Below are positions 798 to 64,000 of a stretch of DNA of 64,000 bases, piece by piece. The first letter of the stretch is position 1; every line of letters starts with the position of its first letter. The stretch covers positions 1 through 64,000 of IMG/VR virus record IMGVR_UViG_3300017971_000001. One strand, given 5' to 3'. Below the pieces are notes generated by a model that made no database searches, was not told where the DNA came from, and was given only the letters and a program-made list of their open reading frames with translations. The translations under genes were made by a program, and so were the position numbers.

Positions 798-3478
<2,681 letters not shown>

Positions 3479-3483
3479 GGTAG

Positions 3484-6225
<2,742 letters not shown>

Positions 6226-23243: not shown

Positions 23244-23725
23244 GGGAATCGCTCTCGTCCAAAGCCGCCCAGGTCGCGCCGGACCTGGTCGGGAAGCACT
23301 TCGCCCACGCTGCCGCGGAGCGTTCGCTGCAAGCCCTCTGCGTCTTCGTAGAGCACCATGGCAGTCGTCGGGGTCTCGTTGTGGTCCATGCCTGAGTCCC
23401 AGAACCGGAACAGCGCGTATTGCAGGACCGGCGCCCCGGCGGCGCGCGAGAACATAGCGAGCTCGCTGTGCGGGACGACTCCGTATTCTCCCAGCGAGGA
23501 CAGGTGGATCCGAATGAAGTCTCCGGATCCCGCGGAAGCCGAGATCAGCTGAACGTCTCGCTCCAGGCGGTTCAGCGGCCGCGGCGGGAGGAGTCCGCGG
23601 ACGCGCGCGATCTCGAGTTCTCGTTCGGCCTCAGCGTCTCCCGAAGCCGCGGCGCGCTGAAGGCGCTGCAGGCGCTCGTCAGCGTTTCTTCGAACGCTTC
23701 TTCGTTGCCTTCTTCTTGGTCGCAC
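23240..23725 (-). CDS. Tag-family protein; start uncertain and overlapping the upstream gene tail
   Basis: GTG-RPRRRQRRSVRRNADERLQRLQRAAASGDAEA. Confidence 0.55.
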   Translation of the reverse strand: MRPRRRQRRSVRRNADERLQRLQRAAASGDAEAERELEIARVRGLLPPRPLNRLERDVQLISASAGSGDFIRIHLSSLGEYGVVPHSELAMFSRAAGAPVLQYALFRFWDSGMDHNETPTTAMVLYEDAEGLQRTLRGSVGEVLPDQVRRDLGGFGRERFP

Positions 23726-25685
23726 GCTTCTTCTTCGCCTTCTTCTTGACGGCCTTCTTCTTGGCGGGGCGCTTCTTCTTTGGAGGGCCGGTTTTCTTCT
23801 TCGGGCGCTTCGAATACTCTTCCTTCCATTCTCGCACTTCGTCGGCGTCGAACAGAAGAATCTCGCGCTCGCTTCCAGCGTGCTCGGGGACGCGATCGTG
23901 AGGAGCGCCCTTGCGAACCCAGGCATAGACCGTGACCGGAGAGACCCCCAGGGCTTCGGCGACCTCCTGTCGCGTCATGCGTCGGTGCCCACGCTGGGGC
24001 TCGATCTGGATCTTGTTCGAGCGAATGTATTCGCTGATCCACTTGGCCGAGGGGCCGAACCTCTCGGACGCCTCGTTGTAGGAGTGCCCAGCGCGGAGGT
24101 AGTCCACGATCTGCTCGTAGAGCTCAGGCCCGTAGCGAATATTCCCCTCCGAGCGCGCCTTGCGGCTCCGCTCCTTGTAGTCCTCGTACCACTCTCGAAC
24201 TTCGTCAGCGTTGAACAGTCGGATCACTCGGCCTGCGCTGTCCTCGCCAACAAGATCATGAGGGACGTCCGTTTTGCGGAGCCAGTGGTCAACCGTGCTG
24301 AGTCCGACGCCGAGCGCTTCGGCGAGCTCGCGCCGGATTAGGCCTCGGTGACCCTTCTGCCGAGCTCGGACCTTTTCCTCCCAGATTTCCTTGCGCCGCT
24401 GACTGGACTTCTCTCGCTGCCGCTGCAGGTATCCCTCGTGCCAGGTCAGGAACTCGTCCTTGTTCCAGACGAGGTCGTTCTTCCAGCGACCGTGGGGTGC
24501 TCCCTCCTCTCGCGCCAGGCCGCGCAGGTGAGACGGGCTCATGCCAAGCTCGTCAGAGAGATCTTCGGTGCTGTAGAGGCCGCGCTCTTCGAGATACCTT
24601 CGCCGGCGCTCGAATTCGCGCTCTGCCGTCGAGCGAGCCTGCTTGGCCTGATCGGCGCGGACGCGTTCGAGGTATTCGTCGTGCCAGGCAATGAGCTCGT
24701 CGGGATTCCAAAGGATCGCGTGCTTGAGTTTCTTGTGGGGAGCGCCGTGTTCTTTGGCGAGGATTCTCAGGTGTTCTTCGCTGATCCCTGCCAGGTCGGC
24801 CATTTCCCTGGTCCCGACGTAGCGCAGCGCGTAGTCAATCGTGACCTTTTTCAGGTTCTTTCGCCCCTGGAAAGTCCAGAACGCCTGTCCGTCAGCAATC
24901 GCTCGCTTGACGTATTCTTCGATCACCTTCTCCCCGAGCGCAGGGAAGTCTACGGCCAGCTGATTGATCGTGGCCGTCCCGTTGCGCGCCTCCAGCGCGT
25001 CAAGGATCTCCGCCATGACGTCGCTGTCCTCGGCAATGGCAGACTTTCCCTTCCGGCGAACCTCGGTCACCTCGCGCTCCTGGGCCTCCATTCGCTCCAT
25101 GAGGCCCGCGGCGTAAGAACTCTGTTCGAGGTGCTCCGTGCAGTACTTCTTGCCGTGACGGGTCGGCTCGCCGCAAATCGCACAGGGCGTAGGCTTCTTT
25201 CGCCCCGGCCCTCGATCGGCTCCGTAGCTCCGATCGACCGTGCGAGGGTTGACTCCAATCGGCGGCCCGCCAGCGTCCATGTCCGGTCCTTCGTAGGGTC
25301 GGCGCGCGTGCGGCAGCGAGAAGTAGAGGCGCTTGAGGAAGGGGCGCTTCTTGAGTCGGGCGCTGATCGCCTGCGCGGTTACGTCGTATCGGCGCGCAGC
25401 CTCGCTGATCGTCAGGCCGTTGTCAATGAGGTCTCGGAAGATCTGATCCCAGACGTGATCCGGCTGCGGCGGGTTGTCTTGCGGCAGGATCCGTACGACG
25501 TCGGGCGGAACAGAGAGCATGAGACTCCGGCCGTTGTCCCAGTCCACGTCGACCTGAGCGAAACCGCCGCGCCGCACGTCACCGACGATCCGCACGCCAC
25601 GAACGACGCCCCTTGTCCCAGGACGGATCGGGCAGGGATCGTCCATGAACACGAGCTCGATCCGGTCTCCAGCTTCAGGGGTCAT
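23679..25685 (-). CDS. DUF4314-like domain plus multiple winged-HTH repeats and a Lys-rich tail
   Basis: GDRIELVFMDDP...VDWDNGRSLML; CxxC..CxxH; four MerR/Nu1-like repeats (..LA..LG.S......W...G.PH.....F.....W); KKK tail. Confidence 0.75.
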   Translation of the reverse strand: MTPEAGDRIELVFMDDPCPIRPGTRGVVRGVRIVGDVRRGGFAQVDVDWDNGRSLMLSVPPDVVRILPQDNPPQPDHVWDQIFRDLIDNGLTISEAARRYDVTAQAISARLKKRPFLKRLYFSLPHARRPYEGPDMDAGGPPIGVNPRTVDRSYGADRGPGRKKPTPCAICGEPTRHGKKYCTEHLEQSSYAAGLMERMEAQEREVTEVRRKGKSAIAEDSDVMAEILDALEARNGTATINQLAVDFPALGEKVIEEYVKRAIADGQAFWTFQGRKNLKKVTIDYALRYVGTREMADLAGISEEHLRILAKEHGAPHKKLKHAILWNPDELIAWHDEYLERVRADQAKQARSTAEREFERRRRYLEERGLYSTEDLSDELGMSPSHLRGLAREEGAPHGRWKNDLVWNKDEFLTWHEGYLQRQREKSSQRRKEIWEEKVRARQKGHRGLIRRELAEALGVGLSTVDHWLRKTDVPHDLVGEDSAGRVIRLFNADEVREWYEDYKERSRKARSEGNIRYGPELYEQIVDYLRAGHSYNEASERFGPSAKWISEYIRSNKIQIEPQRGHRRMTRQEVAEALGVSPVTVYAWVRKGAPHDRVPEHAGSEREILLFDADEVREWKEEYSKRPKKKTGPPKKKRPAKKKAVKKKAKKKRATKKKATKKRSKKR

Positions 25686-26386
25686 TGCCAGAACTCCTCG
25701 GTCCTTGCGCGCCAACGTCGTGAGGATTCGACCAGGAGGCCGTGCGCGTTCTGTTCCCAGTCGCCCTCGAGGTCCTGCGAGTAGTAAGGCGCGTCCACGA
25801 AGGCGCTGATCTTTTGCAGGCCGATCGCGAAGAGGCCCTTGTATTCCGAAGCGAAGACTTGGACCCCGATTGGGACTGGCGAGCGCGCTTCGCCCACGTA
25901 GCGGTGCAGGTTTTGATCGATTCCGCGCCAGGGTTTATAGAGCGCATAGACGCTCCAGATCGGAATGAAGTCCTCTTCGTTGGCTCCGGTGTGCATGCGC
26001 CGATCGATCAGGCTGGAATCAAGGGCGATCCTCAGCACATAAGGCCCGTCACTGAAGGTCAGGAATTCCTCGCTGTCGATCAGGACTTGTTCGGCAGCGA
26101 TCTTGCGCTCGGGTCCGTCTGCCATGAACCCTTCCGGGTCGACGTATTGACCGCTCGCTCTTTCGTAGTCTGCGGACACGGCGTCCTCAGCGCCTTCCTC
26201 GGTCCACACGTTTCGCCGCGGCCACTCGCTGAACTCTCCGCTTGCCAGCATGTCGCTGCGAACGAAATCGCGGGCCTGGTCCGGGTCGTATCGCTTGTAG
26301 GCGGAATAGAGCGCCCGGAAGATCTCGTCGTTGGACGGGTCTTCCGCGTAGGCGCGCTCGAGTTCTCGGGTTCTCCGGTCGCTCAT
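25682..26386 (-). CDS. SD-R-tag protein
   Basis: MSDRRTRELERAYAEDP. Confidence 0.75.
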   Translation of the reverse strand: MSDRRTRELERAYAEDPSNDEIFRALYSAYKRYDPDQARDFVRSDMLASGEFSEWPRRNVWTEEGAEDAVSADYERASGQYVDPEGFMADGPERKIAAEQVLIDSEEFLTFSDGPYVLRIALDSSLIDRRMHTGANEEDFIPIWSVYALYKPWRGIDQNLHRYVGEARSPVPIGVQVFASEYKGLFAIGLQKISAFVDAPYYSQDLEGDWEQNAHGLLVESSRRWRARTEEFWQ

Positions 26387-34184: not shown

Positions 34185-34186
34185 AG

Positions 34187-34273
34187 CGCGGGGTCAACTA
34201 GTCAGGTCCATGTTCTCGGGCTCATAACCCGAGGGGGCGAAAGCCCCACGCAGGTTCGAATCCTGCCCCGCTA
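34187..34273 (+). tRNA. Initiator-type tRNA-Met(CAT) with an atypical long variable arm
   Basis: CGCGGGG/CCCCGCT+A acceptor with C1:U72 mismatch; anticodon arm TCGGG-CTCATAA-CCCGA; GGTTCGAATCC T-arm; extra GGGGC-GAAA-GCCCC arm; no encoded CCA. Confidence 0.8.
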
Positions 34274-35140
34274 TCAGACCGAGCGGAAGTAGACCGTGGC
34301 GGTCATGCCCTGACTCGCGGCGCCAGCGGTGTAGTTCACGCGCAGGCTCTGGGCCGCCGTGAACGCGACGTTATCCACGAAACCGACGTCGCCGCTCGCG
34401 AACACCCCTGAGTTGCTGAGCGTCATTTGCGTGACGCCGTTTCGCTGGATCTGAACGGTACCCGCGCCCGAGGCGAAGTTGAGCGCGATCGCAAGGATCT
34501 CGGCGTCGCGGGGGACGATATAGTCCGTCTCGACGCCCGGCGTGTTCGTTCCGATCACTGAGGCGTCGCCGTTGACGAACGCCAGCGGCTGCGTCGTGAT
34601 CGTCAATTCTCCGCCGAGGTTGGCGCAGAAGCTGTCGAGCGAGGACAGCGAAGCAATGTCCGCTGTGTTCTGGGTAATGTCTGCGCGGTTCTCGTTCAGC
34701 GCCGCGATTAGCGAGGCCGCGCCGGCGAACCCCGACAAGTTCAGATTGCTTCCGTCATTGAAGGGGAGTTGCTGACCTCGAGCTCCGAGAACCAGGTCCT
34801 GCGCGGCGCCGGCGAGAACCTGCAGAACGGCGTTCCCGCCGCCGTTCCCGATCTGGATCAGGGTCGCGGCGACGTCTGCCCACAGCTGGCGCGACGTCAG
34901 CGATCCTTCGATCCGACTGAGGAGTGCCTCGTCGAGCGTTTCGTTGAACTTGCGGGCGTCGGCGCCGTCGCCCGCGGCGAGCATGATTCGTTGCACGGTT
35001 ACCACCTGGAGAATGGTCATGACGACCGGGCCAACAAACCGATCGGGAAGAACGTTCAGCGCGCTCTGCGTCGCCGGGCCGACGTAGCGGTCGGGGAGGA
35101 CTGAGAGTCCGCGTTGGGCTGCTGGTCCGACGAAGGTCAT
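34274..35140 (-). CDS. Putative structural protein (N-terminal short repeat, coiled coil, beta-sandwich C-terminus)
   Basis: FVGPA.Q..L.VLPD repeated two to three times; beta-rich C-terminus. Confidence 0.6.
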   Translation of the reverse strand: MTFVGPAAQRGLSVLPDRYVGPATQSALNVLPDRFVGPVVMTILQVVTVQRIMLAAGDGADARKFNETLDEALLSRIEGSLTSRQLWADVAATLIQIGNGGGNAVLQVLAGAAQDLVLGARGQQLPFNDGSNLNLSGFAGAASLIAALNENRADITQNTADIASLSSLDSFCANLGGELTITTQPLAFVNGDASVIGTNTPGVETDYIVPRDAEILAIALNFASGAGTVQIQRNGVTQMTLSNSGVFASGDVGFVDNVAFTAAQSLRVNYTAGAASQGMTATVYFRSV

Positions 35141-49810: not shown

Positions 49811-50706
49811 GCGACGAGCGAATCCAGCGCCTCGAGCGCGAGCTCACGATCGACTCTAGCAACGTCGACCTTCAGCACGCCCTGGTCCGCGAGCGGGTTC
49901 GGGTCGGTGACTACCTCCCGATCGCGCTCGAGTATCTGCTCGAGGGCAAGCCGGTGCTGCCCTGGCAGTTCAACGCGATCAGCTACGTGTTTCTGGAGGC
50001 CGAGCGCCTCGGTCGGGAAACGGGCTATCAGGAGGGGCGTGTCGAGGCGATCTACCGGCCGGGCGTGGTCAACGCGAACGGCATGGTCCCTATGTGGGGA
50101 CTGGATCAGGCTCCCGACTTCGACGGCTGGGGGAACCCGACTTTCGCGCCCGCCTTGCGGCGCTTCTACGTCAAGACGGCAAGCCTCTGGCTGCAAGGAA
50201 TGGGAGCCCTGGGCGGATTCAGCGAAGAGGAACTCCATGAACTCCCAAGTCGTTTGCGTTATTTGCCCGGCGACCGCCCTGCCTATTCGCTTGAGGTCAC
50301 CCGGCGCTTCGTTCCCCCGCGTCACGTTCCGGCGCTGCACCTGATCGAGGGCTGTCGATACGAATACATGCACAAGGGCAAGCTGAGTCCGGAAGACTCG
50401 GCTTCGATCCCTCGCTTTTTCCTCGAAGAGTTCGAGGGACGCACGTATTACGCAGGCAGGGATCGCTACGACTGCCGGCACGCACGCATGCCCTACAACC
50501 CTCTTCTGCGTCGTGAGTTCGCAGGCAGGTTCCCCGAGCTCCACATGCCTCAGAGGGTCCTGGCGGCCGTCAGGCGCCCCGGCGGATACGTCGACAACTC
50601 CTCGATCTTCCTCGACGTTCGTATGTTCGAGGCGGCGCGGATCATGAAGCGCGTGGGCAAAGGCCGGCGCTGGAAGAACAACCCGTGGCGTCGCTCTCAC
50701 CGCTGA
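49807..50706 (+). CDS. SD-R-tag protein ending in KNNPWRRSHR
   Basis: MSDERIQRLERELTID. Confidence 0.72.
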   Translation: MSDERIQRLERELTIDSSNVDLQHALVRERVRVGDYLPIALEYLLEGKPVLPWQFNAISYVFLEAERLGRETGYQEGRVEAIYRPGVVNANGMVPMWGLDQAPDFDGWGNPTFAPALRRFYVKTASLWLQGMGALGGFSEEELHELPSRLRYLPGDRPAYSLEVTRRFVPPRHVPALHLIEGCRYEYMHKGKLSPEDSASIPRFFLEEFEGRTYYAGRDRYDCRHARMPYNPLLRREFAGRFPELHMPQRVLAAVRRPGGYVDNSSIFLDVRMFEAARIMKRVGKGRRWKNNPWRRSHR

Positions 50707-50955: not shown

Positions 50956-51060
50956 GCTGAGGGAAGCAGGCGGAAAAAGTCGCCATAACTTCTTTCAGAG
51001 CAATCGCTGAGGGAAGCAGGCGGAAAAAGTCGCCATAACTTCTTTCAGAGCAATCGCTGA
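50956..51060. repeat. Exact 50-bp tandem duplication plus a partial third copy
   Basis: gctgagggaagcaggcggaaaaagtcgccataacttctttcagagcaatc at 50956-51005 and 51006-51055; nearby 10-bp tandems at 50801-50820 and 50946-50965. Confidence 0.95.
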
Positions 51061-51299
51061 CGCCGGCCGTCAGTAAATGACGCGGCCTGTCTCCGCCTTC
51101 ATGTACGATCTATCCGCCACGAAGGGACGGTGCTTCGCCGTCCTGGCCACAACGACCCTCGTCGGCTGTCGCGTCAGCCGAGCTCCAGGCCTTGGCGGCT
51201 GGGCAAGGACGACCCCGCCACGGTACATGGATCTGCCCGGTGCGGGCTGCCACCCATTGCACCGGGCAGTTCTATGCACGGCGAGGCCGTAAGGGCAGC

Positions 51300-53401
51300 C
51301 TAGCTGAAGATCATGTCTCGGCCAAGCCCGTGACCGATCGATCGGTGATTTCTGGGCCGAACCTCTCCCCGGCCGCCCTTCCCCTGGAAATGGCCCGCAC
51401 CCTCTCCCTCGACTGCTCGAGCGTAGCCGGCGTCGCTGCCGAGGCCGCGGCCGACCATGCAGACGGTGTTCACGTAGAGGCACATGAAGACGTGCGGCCG
51501 CCGACGCCTCACTAGAAGAGTCCGTATCCGCGGCTGCAGCCAAGCGCCCGGCCCATTCGGTCTCGCGTGCGCGTGCCCCTGAAGACCCCCAAGCCTCCCT
51601 CTAAACTTCCCTTTACCTTAGAGGCCCAGCGCCTGCAGCCAGCACCTTTCATGGCGCGACCCAAAGGCGATCCGATCATTCTTCTCCTTCGCTTCAATTC
51701 TGCACGAACCCGTTCTGGCTCCAGCCGCAGCTAGCACCCGTGCCGCGGGCGACGCCTCTTCTGCGTCGGATCGACCCTCCTTCGCCCTTGTAATACGTGA
51801 TCCCTCTCCCGTCCCGAGATCTCAAGCCCAGGGGCGACTCGGTTCTGGAATCCGTAGAGGCTCAGCGGGATCGAGATATGCGAGCGCCTCACTCGGTTCA
51901 TGGAAACATTCCCGTTCCCAGTGGAGGTCGCTCCTCGGTCCCCTTGCCCGTGAAGCGCGCGAAGGGCACCGCGATCGAGAAGCCCTGCCCTCGACAGGCC
52001 ATGCAGTCAAAGCGCAGGAGGTAACGGCGGCGACGGCGCTTCATTCGACGTCCCGCCGCCCGCAGCGACGAAGCAAACCGGACCCAACGGCGTTTCCGAG
52101 GCTGCGGCCTGCTTGCGCGCAGCCCCAGCCGAAATGGAAGGTGGCGGAGTCATGACTTCCTCCGCCCGTCGATTCGTTCTTCTCGATCCCCCAGCCGCAC
52201 TGCATAGAGCGGACATAGTGACTGACCACGCTATACCCCTTCCTGCGCCTGCGTCTCACAGGATCCTCGCGGATCCGTGACCGCGGCCGACCGTAGAGCA
52301 GATCCCGTAGCTGAAATGAGAGCCGATTCCGTCATTGTCCTTGAGGCCCCACGCGAGGTCGAGCCATTGACCTCGACCGCTGAAGTCAAAAAGGCCTATG
52401 TCGCGATTGCTCCAGCTGGAGGTATGGCAGCCGCCCGTCCTGCGTCGACGCCTCATGAAGACCTCCGACGGAACCACTTCGCAGAGCGGCTTAAGCCTCG
52501 GCCGAACGAACGAAAGAGCCCGTAGCCCAGAACCCCCCTTAATCTTGAAGACGGGCAGCATTTTCCCAGCCCGATCGATCGCTCGAGCCCGAAGCCTCGC
52601 CCCTCCCACAGCGACCACGGCATTCTCTGCCGTCGCTTCACACGCGCCTCCAAAGTACGCCGCTGCCCCTCGACCTGCGCAAGCCGATTCCCGTGGAAAA
52701 CCCGACCCCTATTCCTGAGAAGTCCATAGGAATCCCTCTCCAGCGCCTTCCGCAGCCAACGACCGAGCGCAGTCCTCGTCCGTGCATGGTCCAAAATGGA
52801 GCCGAGCGGAAGCAGCGCCTTCTCCTTCTCAACGACGGCATGAGGAAATGTACCAAGAGGCCCCCAGCGCCCTCCTTAGCCCAGCAGAATAAGCCTTACG
52901 CCCGCCAACTCCAAAGAAGTTCCCGAGTCCATGAGAGACGCCGGCGTTCGCCTTCGACCTTCCGTCGTTTATCTCCAGGCGGACCCAGCGGGCCTTGAAA
53001 AGTCCGGCGCCTGATCGCCTCCTGATTCTCACCACCCAGTGAACTCCCCTCGGTCCCGATCGAGACCCATGCCAATTCGGTTGGTCTTCCTGCGACCCGT
53101 CTGCGAGAGGTAGATCGAGAACCCGCCCGACCTCGGCGTCCTGCGAGCGCCTCCGAAGATCACTCGAGGGAACGCGAGGAAGCTGACCTTGAATTCGTGA
53201 AGGCTGTTACGCCGTCGCCGCACGACCCGCTCCCACGAATCCGATCGAGCTTTTGAGGCTCAAGCGAGGGTCTCCGAACGAAGCGCCTGCGCCCCAGCCA
53301 ACAGTTATCGCCAAACTTCCTCCCCAGCTGCGCCGCAGCCCATAGGAGCGGTTTGAGAACCTCAGCGATACGCCCCTTGAGTTTCTGCGGCGTCTTCTCA
53401 T
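51300..53401 (-). other. Array of translationally coupled M-(R/K)-RRRR Gly-rich microprotein genes
   Basis: ORFs 53207-53401, 53029-53223, 52829-53032, 52638-52832, 52453-52641, 52256-52456, 52041-52259, 51898-52044, 51512-51697 and 51300-51512, mostly joined by NTGA or TAG/GTG overlaps. Confidence 0.75.
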
Positions 53402-53673
53402 GCCAGGTCTCCGTATTTCCGCTGCTCCTCCTGAATCGCCCTCTTCTCCTTTTTGCTTAGCGCGATCCGCTTGGCGAAGTGAGCTCGCTTGTACTGGGAT
53501 TCCCATGTTCCCTTGCGGGGTTGGTGCGGAGCCTTTGCACCCGACGTCGGCCAAGCCTGGATCCGATCGCCGCAGGTCACGCAGGGCTGAGCGACTCTTT
53601 CTTTGGCGCGGCCCTCCGGTGCAATTCCGAAGGTTCCGCAGAAGTCGCAGGAGAAATACCAGATACCGCTCAT
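53398..53673 (-). CDS. Small Zn-finger-like protein embedded in the microprotein array
   Basis: CDFC...CVTC; ATGA-coupled at both ends. Confidence 0.6.
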   Translation of the reverse strand: MSGIWYFSCDFCGTFGIAPEGRAKERVAQPCVTCGDRIQAWPTSGAKAPHQPRKGTWESQYKRAHFAKRIALSKKEKRAIQEEQRKYGDLA

Positions 53674-53876
53674 GACGTCCGTGGGATCTTGTAGGGCCTT
53701 GACCACCCGAAGGATCTTGTGAGTCCATAGGCAGCACTCGAAAACAGGCCTCGGCCGCAGGTTGTCCCCCAAGCCCCGCCGAAGCGAACGGAGACAATGA
53801 ACACGCTGTGGTGCAAGCCAAGCCCTTTCGACCGAGGGGCCCGCGTGTAGACCCTGACGCGCCGACCTCGGGTCAC
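53670..53876 (-). CDS. RRRR-family microprotein (divergent)
   Basis: MTRGRRVRV...GLGL...GRGL...YGL; coupled at both ends. Confidence 0.55.
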   Translation of the reverse strand: MTRGRRVRVYTRAPRSKGLGLHHSVFIVSVRFGGAWGTTCGRGLFSSAAYGLTRSFGWSRPYKIPRTS

Positions 53877-54533: not shown

Positions 54534-54817
54534 TCCGGCTTCCAGTTCGCCGCTTCACGGAGACTCTCGAGCGAAGTCGTGCGGGCCAGGTAGTCGTAGG
54601 GACCGTCCCCGTCCTTGTCGAACAGGCTCTCGTCCGCAAGGTCTTCGTAGGGGATCGTGTCCACGTCGCCCGCTCCGTAGTTGGAGGATCCGTCGCTGAA
54701 GCCCTCGGCATAGGCCGTTCGTTCCGCCTCGGTCTTGAAGTGAACGACGCCTTCGAGGTAGCCCTCGCAGCAGCAGAGCAAGGTAAACGGCTTGTCTTCG
54801 TGATTCCCGGTTTTCAC
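54530..54817 (-). CDS. Acidic hypothetical protein
   Basis: Coupled at both ends. Confidence 0.6.
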   Translation of the reverse strand: MKTGNHEDKPFTLLCCCEGYLEGVVHFKTEAERTAYAEGFSDGSSNYGAGDVDTIPYEDLADESLFDKDGDGPYDYLARTTSLESLREAANWKPE

Positions 54818-55227
54818 TAGTAGTCCTCCCGCTTGCGGGCTCCCTCTTTGAGGCTCTTGAACAACTCGACCGCCTGATCCCGCGTCGGCGGCACGCCCTC
54901 CGATTTCAGGAGGTCCGTTCCGCGCCTCCAGATCTCGTAGTATTCGTCGTCGGTCGCGCAGATCAAGTTCAATTTGCCGAACATGAGCTTCTCCTTCTCG
55001 TCGCTGAACTGCTTCAGCCAGTCAGCCAGGCGCGGGTCGATCCGAATGACGAGATCGACGTCGCTGTCCGGCCGCGCGTTTCCGTAAGCATGACTCCCCG
55101 TCAAGAAAGCGTGCTGCTTCCCCCTGCGCGTGACCCTGGCCAGCGCTATGAGCAGCAGAAAGACCGCCGTGCTCGAGATCAACGACATGAAGCAGGCAAG
55201 CATGCCCAGCGCTCCCAACTCTTCCAC
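54817..55227 (-). CDS. Minimal nucleotidyltransferase (MNT/Pol-beta fold) with an N-terminal hydrophobic segment
   Basis: FLTGSHAYG...DSDVDL (GS, DxD); start inferred from a TAG/GTG overlap. Confidence 0.75.
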   Translation of the reverse strand: MEELGALGMLACFMSLISSTAVFLLLIALARVTRRGKQHAFLTGSHAYGNARPDSDVDLVIRIDPRLADWLKQFSDEKEKLMFGKLNLICATDDEYYEIWRRGTDLLKSEGVPPTRDQAVELFKSLKEGARKREDY

Positions 55228-55818
55228 TACCAACTCCCGTGCAGCTTGTTTAAACCTTCGCCGCAGCAATGTTGAACTCCTGAGCCAACGACCCCCTCGG
55301 GGTAGATCAGGTGAAAAGAGAACCTCTTCAGGAATGTGTCCATAGGTCCCGTGCCTACCCTTCTCCTCAACCCAACTCCGTCCTGGACGACGTAGCAGCG
55401 ATACCTTCTGCGGCGGTTCACTACCAATCACCATGGCAGAGGGTCAATCCTGATCCGGTCTGTGCATACAGACCCTTGCCGACGACCCCTTCGCCATACA
55501 CAAGGTGCTTGCCAATGAACTTCGAGAAGTCGTCCATGGCCCCAATGCCCGAGGCGCAACTCTGACCGACGCCGCCCTGAATCGAGAACATGCGATACCT
55601 TCTGCGACGCCTCAAAGGTGGATCGTGTAGTTGCCGGACATGCGTGACGTGCCGCGACCAATCCAGACGCCCGATCGAAGCAGGCGAGAGGACCGCCACT
55701 TCCTAGCCCCGGTTCCGAGTGCTCGGTTCAAACCGATTCCGGTCCCCGTTTGATTGCCGACGCCCGTTGCCGGAGCCGCTGAATAGCGATAGAGCCGCCT
55801 TCTTCCCGCACGATTCAT
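55227..55818 (-). other. Second cluster of three RRRR-family microprotein genes
   Basis: 55612-55818, 55421-55615 and 55227-55421; the last two are clear paralogs. Confidence 0.75.
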
Positions 55819-55847: not shown

Positions 55848-56327
55848 ATGGACGATCCGCCTGTGATCCAGTTCAAGCCGAAGCCAGACCCTCCTCCCAA
55901 GAAGGAGGAGGAGGTCAAGGACGACGGTTACCTCGCGCCCGAGCTCGGGAAGCTCGTCAACCGCCGCGTGTCCCTCCCCAACGAACTGTGGGAAGAAGTG
56001 ATCGACATGGCGAAGGCGGGCGGGAGTAACTACCAGGACCTGCTGGCTTGCTTGATCGACCTCGGCATGAGGGCTCAGGCGCTGGGAGAAGACCGGCCTC
56101 GTCGGGTCCTGGTCGAGACAGGGATTCACACGCGGATCGAGCTCCTGCGCGAGGGGCAGACTCCAGAGTTCCTCGGCGAGGTCCGGATCCCCCAGGTGCC
56201 CGCGGTCGGTGAGGCGATCTCGTTCCAGCGGGCCGGTTACGTCGTCGAGCAGCGCGCCTGGCGCCTGAAGGAGGACGGGGCGACAGCGTTCCTGCGGGTC
56301 AAGCGGTTCGGCAAGAAGAAGCATTAG
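55848..56327 (+). CDS. Ribbon-helix-helix-like regulator fused to a small domain
   Basis: TATCCT-N6-ATG; RRVSLPNELWEEVIDMAKAGG. Confidence 0.6.
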   Translation: MDDPPVIQFKPKPDPPPKKEEEVKDDGYLAPELGKLVNRRVSLPNELWEEVIDMAKAGGSNYQDLLACLIDLGMRAQALGEDRPRRVLVETGIHTRIELLREGQTPEFLGEVRIPQVPAVGEAISFQRAGYVVEQRAWRLKEDGATAFLRVKRFGKKKH

Positions 56328-62767: not shown

Positions 62768-63389
62768 TTCGCTCCAATTCCTCTACCCTTTTCTTCATGG
62801 ACGCGAACTCTCGGTAGAGATCGGCCGTCTCGTTGCTGATCAGGCCCCGGATCGCCTGCTGAAATGGATTGCCGTAAACCCAGTTGTGAGGACTGGACAT
62901 GACCTCCGGGACCAGGGCGGCGAACGCCAGCCAGTTCAGCTGCTTCTGGGTGAAATCCCTGCCGGCCTCGAAGGCGTCACGGCGCTCGTGTCGATACAGA
63001 CCCTGATCCCGTTCAGCCCGAACGGGCTGAATGATCCCAGGGTTTACAAGAGGGGGGTTCACGTCGAACGAATCCAGGTTGTAGGTGACGTAGACCTCCT
63101 TCCCGTTTGCCTGCGCCGCCTGGCCGTCGTGCTCCGTGTACATTCCTTCGAAGGTCTCGTGCGTCCCTCCCCCGAGTTCCGGCTCGGGCAGCACCGATTC
63201 GATCGAATCTCCCTTCGGGCCGCAGACGATCCGCGCTAGGTTCGTCCAGCCAATCGCCTGGCCGACGATCGAGATTGCGTCGGCGCCGTTCGATCGCGAC
63301 CAGGAGCGGACGACGCGCTCGGCGAGCTCAGGGTCCGATCGATCCGCGAGCCACTCGTTAACCGCGTTCAAGAGATCGTCGTCGCTCAA
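62751..63389 (-). CDS. Hypothetical protein
   Basis: GGAGG RBS; TTGA-coupled start MSDDDLL. Confidence 0.6.
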   Translation of the reverse strand: MSDDDLLNAVNEWLADRSDPELAERVVRSWSRSNGADAISIVGQAIGWTNLARIVCGPKGDSIESVLPEPELGGGTHETFEGMYTEHDGQAAQANGKEVYVTYNLDSFDVNPPLVNPGIIQPVRAERDQGLYRHERRDAFEAGRDFTQKQLNWLAFAALVPEVMSSPHNWVYGNPFQQAIRGLISNETADLYREFASMKKRVEELERNAEEE

Positions 63390-64000
63390 AACCCCTCCAT
63401 GAGTTCTTCCGTGCGCGTATCCCAAAACAACTGGACCCAGTCGCCCATGTTTCCTTGATTCTTTCGTTGGTAGTCGGCCCAGAGCGTCGCGCTCCCCATG
63501 GTGAAGCTAATGCCAGAGGCGAACGTATAGGACGAAAAGGAGAAGTCGCTGAGCGAAAGGGAGAACCCTTTCCCAAGCCCTGCTGAATATGCAGAAGACA
63601 GCCCCCTGCCGTAGGCCAGAAAGCTGAGCAGGGGCCGGGGGCGAAGCCGGCGCCGTCGCCTCTTCATAGGAAGGCTGATCCCATGCGGTAGTTCAGGCCG
63701 GCACCCACGGGCGCTGATCGCTTCCAACTTTCAGAGCAGTCATAGGGAAAGCGGCCGGGTCTAAGCCTCCAGAACGACATGGAGCGGTTGCCCCCCTTCC
63801 CCCTGACCCGATCCTGACCCCAGCCAAGCGCGAACTGACTCGAGGGCGGGTGGTCACGAAGGTAGGTTCGACGGCGTCGTTTCAAGTCGCCAATCCGAAG
63901 AGTCGAGGCCGGCGAACCTGACTGGAACCCAACGCTTGCTCCAGCCCCCGGCCGAACGATAGCCCCCTGCCGCCTGCACTGCCTCGGGCAAAGTATCCGC
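63386..64000 (-). other. Third cluster of RRRR-family microprotein genes, running off the window edge
   Basis: 63386-63667 (MKRRRRRL), 63664-63885 (MKRRRRTY) and a partial upstream ORF with FGRGL ending in TGA at 63882. Confidence 0.7.

Follow-up and report, generated by a model that had tools for sequence, protein, structure and literature searches.

A stretch of a 245-kb phage genome that gene finders leave empty holds a chain of genes for strongly positively charged, glycine-rich proteins of about 64 residues, and these belong to a family of at least 52 copies for which we found no relatives beyond one related phage lineage. The window analysed here is a 64,000-nucleotide stretch of this genome (contig positions 1 to 64,000), and it contains 17 members; at least 52 are present between 51 and 83 kb of the contig, in six chained arrays, and about 36 of them lie beyond the window. 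Automated gene calling recorded about 3 of the 52, and none in the array at 51,300 to 53,876. Members begin M-[K/R]-R-R-R-R and continue into a body with Gly at alternate positions. Any function for these proteins is inferred from sequence alone.

The original prediction described ten minus-strand open reading frames, with starts at 53401, 53223, 53032, 52832, 52641, 52456, 52259, 52044, 51697 and 51512, together with a divergent one at 53876. This observation held, and was if anything understated, as every frame exists with the predicted start, length and N-terminus. Two corrections are needed. The frame at 53673–53398, inside the interval, is a conventional gene and not a member, and the family extends well outside the interval, with further members in the window starting at 55818, 55615, 55421, 63885 and 63667. 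The features of the region, with orthologs in a related phage contig (referred to here as L108), are as follows.

53670..53876, minus strand: divergent family member, 68 aa (MTRGRR...), its stop overlapping the start of the Zn-ribbon-like gene by 4 nt; ortholog in L108 at 14780.
53398..53673, minus strand: conventional 91-aa gene, Zn-ribbon-like as judged from four Cys in two CxxC pairs, not a family member, its stop overlapping the first array member (ATGA); 81% identical to the L108 ortholog, dN/dS 0.15.
53207..53401, minus strand: member, 64 aa, MRRRRRN; ortholog at L108 14314, 60% identity, dN/dS 0.35.
53029..53223, minus strand: member, 64 aa, MRRRRNS, with a GTG start and a 17-nt overlap with the previous member; ortholog at L108 14139, 76% identity, dN/dS 0.20.
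52829..53032, minus strand: member, 67 aa, MRIRRRS; ortholog at L108 13951, 79% identity, dN/dS 0.11.
52638..52832, minus strand: member, 64 aa, MRRRRRC, for which in-frame starts upstream at 52841 and 52856 are also possible; ortholog at L108 13560, 81% identity, dN/dS 0.25.
52453..52641, minus strand: member, 62 aa, MKRRQRM, with a GGAGG Shine-Dalgarno-like site upstream; ortholog at L108 13366, 59% identity.
52256..52456, minus strand: member, 66 aa, MRRRRRT, with a GGAGG site upstream; ortholog at L108 13181, 46% identity, dN/dS 0.46.
52041..52259, minus strand: member, 72 aa, MRRRRRK; ortholog at L108 12990, 66% identity, dN/dS 0.20.
51898..52044, minus strand: short member, 48 aa, MKRRRRRY; ortholog at L108 12569, 80% identity, dN/dS 0.12.
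51694..51901, minus strand: member with a 1-nt insertion relative to its L108 ortholog; the N-half reads MNRVRRS... (frame 51901–51731), and the C-half stays open in the next frame (51825–51694) and ends in the TTGA overlap with the next member; the same sequence is found in three other assemblies.
51512..51697, minus strand: member, 61 aa, MKRRRRM; ortholog at L108 11874, 46% identity, dN/dS 0.29.
51300..51512, minus strand: last member of this array (array A), 70 aa, MRRRRPH; ortholog at L108 11686, 80% identity, dN/dS 0.15.
51223..51279, no strand assigned: inverted repeat (21-nt arms, 86% complementary, 15-nt loop) about 20 nt past the last stop, inferred to be a possible end of the leftward transcript; it has no T-run and was not listed by a terminator scan.
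55612..55818, minus strand: member, 68 aa, MNRAGRRR, one of the few called by gene finders (P0001); ortholog at L108 16729.
55421..55615, minus strand: member, 64 aa, MRRRRRY, with a TTG start, which gene callers started at Met9 (P0002); ortholog at L108 16317, 77% identity, dN/dS 0.17.
55227..55421, minus strand: member, 64 aa, MNRRRRY, a paralog of the preceding gene (48% aa but 54% nt identity, dN/dS about 0.4), its stop abutting the start of the nucleotidyltransferase gene.
63664..63885, minus strand: member, 73 aa, MKRRRRT, the tenth gene of an 11-gene array that starts outside the window at contig position 65508.
63386..63667, minus strand: member, 93 aa, MKRRRRR, the last gene of that array, with a longer C-terminal tail.

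Within array A the junctions are 4-nt overlaps of the form ATGA, GTGA or TTGA. The exceptions are the 17-nt overlap at 53223, a 1-nt overlap at 51512, and an apparent 33-nt gap that is explained by the previously unlisted member at 51901. The chain is not attributable to chance: the observed run of overlaps is 8 (strict overlap) or 9 (loose), compared with a maximum of 5 (strict) or 6 (loose) in 2000 dinucleotide shuffles, and 2.1-kb windows of the plus strand reached at most 4. Scans for direct and tandem repeats, tRNAs and Rfam families found none in the region, the only such hit being one tRNA-Met at 34 kb. A scan for sigma-70 promoters and terminators found nothing informative inside the array. 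Gene callers also left the stretch empty in independent assemblies of the same phage.

Comparison with L108, whose flanking proteins are 64–81% identical, demonstrates that these are genuine genes. This relative keeps 15 chained members with the same starts, frames and overlaps, and pooled dN/dS over 11 ortholog pairs is 0.23, similar to the flanking genes (0.15–0.25), with 178, 138 and 313 substitutions at codon positions 1, 2 and 3. The Arg runs use all six Arg codons and, of 41 aligned Arg-Arg positions in the N-terminal runs, 27 use different codons in the two phages, 11 of them being switches between CGN and AGR. The antisense frame that shares wobble positions is closed in 61 of 69 members, and antisense coding was rejected. 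Shine-Dalgarno-like sites are enriched about 2-fold at the starts, about half of the genes having one, and GC3 is highest in the proposed frames. An array of RNA or DNA elements, in which a purine-rich junction motif merely happens to read as Arg, might be suggested by the failure of gene callers and by the unusual composition of the region (GC2 of 0.61), but the conserved frames, the excess of third-position changes and the switching of codons while Arg is kept lead us to reject it. Retention of a nucleotide motif without the reading frames had been set in advance as the outcome that would overturn a coding interpretation, and the relative was found to keep the frames.

The interpretation offered in the original prediction is partly supported. 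Selection at the level of the peptide, rather than on a DNA or RNA repeat, is supported by these observations, as is the statement that no equivalent had been described, since none was found in any library searched. The suggestion of a conserved basic leader followed by a hypervariable core is not supported. Paralogs are very divergent, but each is as conserved between the two phages as ordinary genes (46–81% identity by global alignment), and conservation runs over the whole length, with 87% of Gly and 80% of Arg retained; Gly, Arg, Phe and Trp are the best-conserved residues between orthologs. The functions that it listed (nucleic-acid condensing, membrane-active, RiPP-like or anti-defence) remain hypotheses, of which the RiPP idea is weakened.

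The proteins contain 17% R, 17% G and only 4% D + E, with a median net charge of +10. The body follows a phi-G-x-G-L-x-R-S pattern with a period of about 8 residues, in which aromatic residues and Arg are kept and acidic residues are avoided. GxG occurs 4.3 times per protein against 0.5 expected, and Gly-Gly spacing is enriched at lags 2, 6, 8 and 10 and depleted at odd lags. Depletion at lag 3 (0.39) is inconsistent with collagen-like repeats, which have Gly at every third position. The classical RGG box of RNA-binding regions is also absent: the GG dipeptide is strongly depleted (57 observed against 144 expected), the enriched units being GRG, RGL and GxGL. No transmembrane segment is present, and the residues after the Arg run are mixed polar, aromatic and Gly, with no hydrophobic core, whereas in Tat or Sec signal peptides the basic n-region is followed by a hydrophobic region of 10–20 residues and a cleavage site. 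AlphaFold predicted no fold: a 16-sequence alignment gave pLDDT 54 with one low-confidence helix, and a 69-sequence alignment gave pLDDT 48 with no secondary structure, although a low score can reflect the shallow, paralog-only alignment rather than true disorder.

Searches for related sequences returned little. No significant match was found in Pfam, PHROGs, NCBIfam, PADLOC or PDB sequences, the best being a non-significant KRTAP (Gly/Tyr-rich keratin-associated) hit at E = 0.07. An exhaustive profile search of 1.84 billion protein representatives with a 16-member alignment gave only two self hits, but it also missed members that gene callers had called in L108 and so has little power for such short, divergent proteins. 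A word-based search with the 69-member profile recovered one L108 member at E = 2. Two-motif and three-motif DNA patterns in IMG/VR gave, apart from this contig, only chance off-frame frames. The same three-motif pattern matched at least 120 times in genome contigs and the 120 hits examined were all chance; cellular genomes are not excluded. Searches anchored on the flanking 299-aa, 568-aa and Zn-ribbon-like proteins found only this phage and one relative lineage, and a further contig with a weak tblastn hit (L117) has no members. Literature searches found nothing comparable.

The genes sit in long leftward operons, among nucleotide-metabolism and regulator-type genes, and are joined to each other and to conventional genes by 4-nt overlaps. 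A Pfam scan of 10 neighbours at 54–61.6 kb, together with precomputed Pfam hits for the called genes at 40–84 kb, identified only DHFR, cpYpsA, NT5C, a nucleotidyltransferase (NTP_transf_2), HTH and Zn_ribbon_8. Most neighbours match no family, and no lysis or virion genes were recognised beside the arrays within this part of the contig.

We consider it established with high confidence that the region is protein-coding and is one of at least six arrays of a paralogous family, which occupies about 10 kb or roughly 4% of the genome. What follows is inference. From the layout, each array is probably read by ribosomes handed from gene to gene, giving a roughly equimolar mixture of 10–16 different products, each with fMet followed by a run of 4–6 Arg/Lys. 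Our preferred but tentative explanation, which falls short of being more likely than not, is that the proteins act in the infected cell as disordered polycations that bind nucleic acid. They may coat or condense DNA or RNA, and may form a gel or coacervate around phage or host nucleic acid; in this view, the Arg run would be the anchor and the Gly/aromatic/Arg body would give multivalent contacts. The many divergent but individually conserved paralogs could provide a high total dose without identical, recombination-prone or self-aggregating copies, or alternatively each could have its own target. No experiment or homology links the family to nucleic acid, however, the classical RGG box is absent, and 52 different genes are not needed for simple charge neutralisation. 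Furthermore, each paralog is conserved in specific sequence and not only in composition, which fits defined partners or a fold formed on binding better than a generic polycation. A more far-reaching possibility, which is not excluded but appears unlikely, is that a jumbo phage devotes about 4% of its genome to more than 50 diversified, translationally coupled, poly-Arg-tagged Gly/aromatic low-complexity microproteins that together form a polycationic condensate or gel with nucleic acid, such as a membrane-less replication or packaging compartment or a protamine-like genome coat. This would be a class of phage protein with no described counterpart, and one that is invisible to standard gene calling.

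Several other roles can be proposed, all of them less likely. A cocktail of membrane-active cationic peptides, attacking anionic membranes from inside to help lysis (like the cationic ‘disruptin’ of some phages) or after release against competing bacteria, would be consistent with the high charge, the enriched aromatic residues (F 5.0%, W 2.8%) and the poly-Arg tag, a classic membrane-binding and cell-penetrating feature, and the many diversified paralogs made together resemble antimicrobial-peptide cocktails. Disruptin-type peptides, however, are amphipathic, helical and encoded in the lysis cassette, whereas here no amphipathic helix or other structure is predicted, no signal peptide is present, the arrays sit among nucleotide-metabolism and regulator genes with no endolysin or holin recognised nearby, and 52 genes is far beyond any known lysis accessory. 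Equally unlikely on present evidence is that the Arg run is a targeting tag that takes diverse small basic proteins into the capsid with the DNA, to be injected and to protect the genome or disarm host defences, in the manner of the T4 internal proteins. The short conserved tag ahead of diverse bodies, and arrays that gain and lose whole cassettes between relatives (L108 has 4 extra members in array A), are compatible with this, but there is no homology to any PHROG or virion protein, no protease-type cleavage motif follows the tag, acidic residues being rare, and the arrays are not in the structural module.

Anti-defence factors, each neutralising a different host immune component, for example by binding guide or signal nucleic acids or by acting as a protease or sensor decoy, are somewhat less likely again. 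A large, deeply diverged paralog set with gene gain and loss between two close relatives could reflect an arms race, and the genes sit in early-type operons next to a cpYpsA (SLOG) gene and a nucleotidyltransferase gene. Against this, the best PADLOC match was E = 0.038 for a single member, no other library gave a match, dN/dS of 0.11–0.46 shows purifying rather than diversifying selection on each ortholog pair, and anti-defence proteins described so far are mostly acidic or folded. RiPP-type precursors appear very unlikely. Cys is enriched (2.5% against 1.1% in control genes), but the M-[KR]-R4 shared across the family is only 6 residues, compared with the 15 aa or more typical of a leader recognised by an enzyme, there is no export signal, and no YcaO, radical-SAM, lanthionine-synthetase or protease families were found among the neighbours covered by the Pfam scans above, most of which match no family.

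The findings provide a clear case of a large gene family under purifying selection that annotation pipelines miss almost completely, and apparently non-coding kilobases in large phages can therefore hide dozens of real genes. The products combine three features that we did not find described together: a homopolymeric Arg N-terminus, an alternating-Gly low-complexity body, and strict stop/start chaining. If they condense nucleic acid or build a compartment, they would be a new way for a bacterial virus to organise its infection; if they are membrane-active or anti-defence, they would be a new reservoir of cationic peptides or inhibitors. The cassette-like gain and loss of whole genes at the conserved junction is also a tidy model for how microprotein families expand.

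Several described systems share individual features with this family. Multi-precursor RiPP loci, such as prochlorosin-type arrays, are likewise tandem arrays of many short paralogous genes with a shared N-terminus, but the shared segment here is too short for a leader, no modifying enzyme was found nearby, and conservation is not confined to it. The N protein of lambdoid phages has an N-terminal Arg-rich stretch on a small, intrinsically disordered protein, but is a single-copy gene with an RNA hairpin target, where this family has 52 copies, a homopolymeric Arg run and no identified target. Protamine-like core proteins of some animal and insect DNA viruses are small, very basic, acid-poor DNA condensers, and the present proteins could plausibly neutralise DNA charge in a similar way; Arg is 17% here, however, not 40% or more, the bodies are Gly/aromatic-rich with a defined G-x-G periodicity, there are many distinct paralogs, and no such protein is known in tailed phages. 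Gly at alternate positions flanked by aromatic or aliphatic residues recalls silk-like GX repeats, kinked LARKS-type segments and GLFG-type repeats, a kind of sequence that can form reversible cross-beta contacts. The phage proteins, also predicted to be disordered, are short and stand-alone with a strong positive charge, and there is no evidence of fibre or gel formation. The T4-type internal proteins (IPI, IPII and IPIII) are also diverse, small, basic phage proteins with a short conserved N-terminal tag, in their case a capsid-targeting sequence that is removed by the prohead protease, and are encoded in a plastic multi-gene locus. They share no sequence similarity with the present family, in which the tag is a bare Arg run without a protease site and is carried by 52 copies rather than a handful.

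The genome examined, IMGVR_UViG_3300017971_000001, is a viral contig of 245,276 bp, of which the window is the first 64 kb. It is a large tailed phage with a G + C content of about 63%, with collagen-like tail-fibre proteins and many genes without known families. Two large collagen-repeat proteins (737 and 911 aa, window 1265-6225) match phage tail-fibre families and have an unusually high GC2 (0.61-0.71), and a 678-aa protein (window 23679-25715), unusually large for a phage regulator, has several helix-turn-helix domains and an N-terminal DUF4314. A single tRNA-Met (CAT) at window 34186-34275 is unusually long, at about 90 nt, and scores just above the Rfam threshold (29.7 against 29 bits). 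Nearly identical copies of this phage occur in independent JGI, ENA and Logan assemblies, with 1-2 differences in 20.9 kb and none in the array of short open reading frames (ORFs) analyzed here.

All of the ORFs listed in the original prediction are present with the starts, lengths and N-termini that it gave, and the observation is real and highly non-random. Eleven consecutive ORFs of 48-72 codons lie on the minus strand, each starting M-[R/K]-R-R-R-R or a close variant, and nearly all are joined by ATGA, GTGA or TTGA overlaps. The features in and around this array are as follows.

50956-51055: perfect 2 x 50-nt tandem duplication in the convergent intergenic region between the rightward gene ending at 50706 and the end of the leftward array.
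51223-51279: inverted repeat with 21-nt arms about 20 nt after the last array gene, a possible transcript end without a T-run; the 230 nt between it and the tandem duplication hold no family member.
53401 to 51300, minus strand: the eleven consecutive ORFs.
51694-51901: member starting at 51901, missing from the original list, with a 1-nt insertion relative to its ortholog.
53673-53398: conventional 91-aa Zn-ribbon-like gene, not a member of the family.
54817-55434: 205-aa ORF from the mechanical ORF list that is a chimera; the real nucleotidyltransferase gene (136 aa, NTP_transf_2) starts at 55227, and the upstream part overlaps family member 55421-55227 in another frame.
55848-56327, plus strand: single 159-aa rightward gene called inside the otherwise leftward operon, overlapping an equally long leftward ORF, so that either strand may be the coding one.

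The one apparent break in the chain as first described (51731 to 51697) is explained by the member starting at 51901, whose C-terminal half remains open in the next frame and ends exactly in the TTGA overlap with the next gene. The insertion is present in all four assemblies of this phage, yet the downstream half is still conserved in the shifted frame, and this could represent a recent pseudogene, a split gene restarting at TTG 51825, or a frameshift site. A chain of 8 (strict overlap) or 9 (loose) ORFs of at least 45 codons was never reached in 2000 dinucleotide-preserving shuffles, where the maximum was 5 or 6, and the plus strand of the window reached at most 4. Searches of the region identified no direct or tandem DNA repeats, no tRNAs, and no Rfam matches, and gene callers left the whole stretch empty.

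Evidence that these ORFs are genes came from a relative identified through the flanking 299-aa protein (64% identity), Logan contig SRR17165170_9806 (22.8 kb, referred to here as L108), of which there is also a shorter copy, L109. L108 has the same apparently empty stretch and, on the same strand, it holds 15 chained members with the same kind of starts and 4-nt overlaps. Eleven members in the window have positional orthologs at 46-81% amino-acid identity; their pooled dN/dS is 0.23, with 178/138/313 differences at codon positions 1/2/3, and six flanking conventional genes give dN/dS values of 0.15-0.25. The antisense frame that would share wobble positions is closed by stops in 61 of 69 members. 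Within the Arg runs, 27 of 41 orthologous Arg-Arg positions use different codons, including 11 CGN<->AGR switches, and Arg is therefore selected as an amino acid, as had been argued in the original prediction. Furthermore, an adjacent pair of paralogs (55615/55421) is 48% identical in protein but only 54% in DNA, with a dN/dS of about 0.4. Shine-Dalgarno-like cores are about twice as frequent at the proposed starts as inside the genes (45% against 21%), and the remaining members presumably rely on termination-reinitiation. It had been set out beforehand that relatives keeping the motif but not the frames would count against coding; the relative keeps the frames, and the non-coding reading is rejected.

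The family is about five times larger than was first described. Further members occur in the window at 55818, 55615, 55421, 63885, and 63667, and additional stretches of the contig (L116, L119, L128, and L131) showed more arrays. One of these has 11 genes (contig 65508 to 63386), all with 4-nt overlaps, another has 15-16 genes (72439 to 69385), and smaller arrays and solo genes reach about 83 kb. In total, 52 members were catalogued in this phage, of which about 3 were recorded in the gene calls retrieved with these loci. L108 contributed 17 to the catalogue, and two more orthologs were found later, giving 19 in its 22.8 kb. Arrays begin at the stop codon of a conventional gene (the Zn-ribbon-like gene, cpYpsA) and can hand on to one (the nucleotidyltransferase). 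For example, in L116 (7896-8381 and 6291-6800, contig about 65.5-67.6 kb), the stop of the cpYpsA (SLOG-type) gene overlaps the first gene of the 11-member array, and a DHFR gene lies just upstream. Neighbours with a recognizable family are DHFR, cpYpsA, a 5'-nucleotidase, a nucleotidyltransferase, HTH proteins, and a Zn_ribbon_8 protein, which has the look of an early or middle region and not of a virion or lysis module.

The 69 members have a median length of 64 aa; their start codons are GTG (31), ATG (29), and TTG (9), and the stop codon is TGA in 55 of 69. Position 2 is K, R, S, T, N, or I, all from A-initial codons as the ATGA overlap demands, and positions 3-6 are Arg in 50-64 of the 69. 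The composition is R 17%, G 17%, S 9%, and D+E 4%, compared with R 9%, G 8%, and D+E 14% in ordinary genes of the window, and the median net charge is +10. The motif GxG occurs 4.3 times per protein against 0.5 expected, and GxG followed by an aliphatic or aromatic residue occurs 2.1 times against 0.09. Between orthologs, the residues that are best kept are Gly (87%), Arg (80%), Phe (72%), and Trp (71%). Structure prediction with AlphaFold gave no confident model with either 16 or 69 aligned sequences (pLDDT 54 and 48, respectively), and no secondary structure in the deeper run.

Paralogs are deeply diverged, with the best paralog typically at 30-45% identity over part of the length, while positional orthologs are far closer; the expansion therefore predates the split of the two phages, and each copy is individually maintained. 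L108 has four extra members in array A (the array from 53401 to 51300), inserted as whole cassettes that preserve the overlaps. Members at L108 12772, 12432, 12050, 13745, and 16529 are absent from the window phage, whereas the window has 55421, which L108 lacks. Whole genes are gained or lost with the stop/start overlaps kept intact, which suggests recombination at the conserved junction.

Searches for relatives or known families were all negative. Pfam, PHROGs, NCBIfam, PADLOC, and PDB sequences gave nothing significant, and a profile search of 1.84 billion protein representatives returned only two proteins of this contig. A word-indexed search with the 69-member profile returned one L108 member at E = 2. 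Spaced-motif DNA scans of IMG/VR found real arrays only in this contig, and a partial scan of cellular genomes with the same motifs gave chance matches only. Scans of JGI metagenomes and IMG/VR with anchor genes found only the phage itself. These searches have limited power for divergent proteins of 60 residues that gene callers skip, and absence elsewhere is not proven by them. Literature searches found no description of anything similar.

The analysis demonstrates a conserved, translationally chained family of polycationic, low-complexity microproteins with no export signal and no recognizable fold. The interpretation first offered was supported in part: its coding reading is correct, whereas any function is a matter of inference. 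It is inferred that co-translation of each array should give a roughly equimolar cocktail of products. The charge, the Arg anchor, the retention of Arg, Gly, and aromatic residues, and the cytoplasmic, early-type context make binding to nucleic acid the most economical reading, which could mean coating, condensation, or a coacervate-like compartment. This suggestion is tentative. Against it stand the lack of any direct evidence, the absence of RGG motifs, and the specific conservation of each paralog, which hints at defined partners or folding on binding.

Other possibilities are that the products are membrane-active cationic peptides, packaged or ejected internal proteins for which the Arg run would be a targeting tag, anti-defence factors, or RiPP precursors. 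Compared with RiPP precursors, the ‘leader’ here has 6 residues, conservation extends over the whole length, and no enzymes were found nearby, each of which weakens that idea. In the spacing of the glycines of the family members, Gly-Gly pairs are enriched at lags 2, 6, 8, and 10 and depleted at all odd lags, GG itself is depleted (57 against 144), and the common unit is phi-G-x-G-L-x-R-S. This excludes both a collagen-type period and a classical RGG box, and points to alternating-Gly, strand-like or kinked segments.
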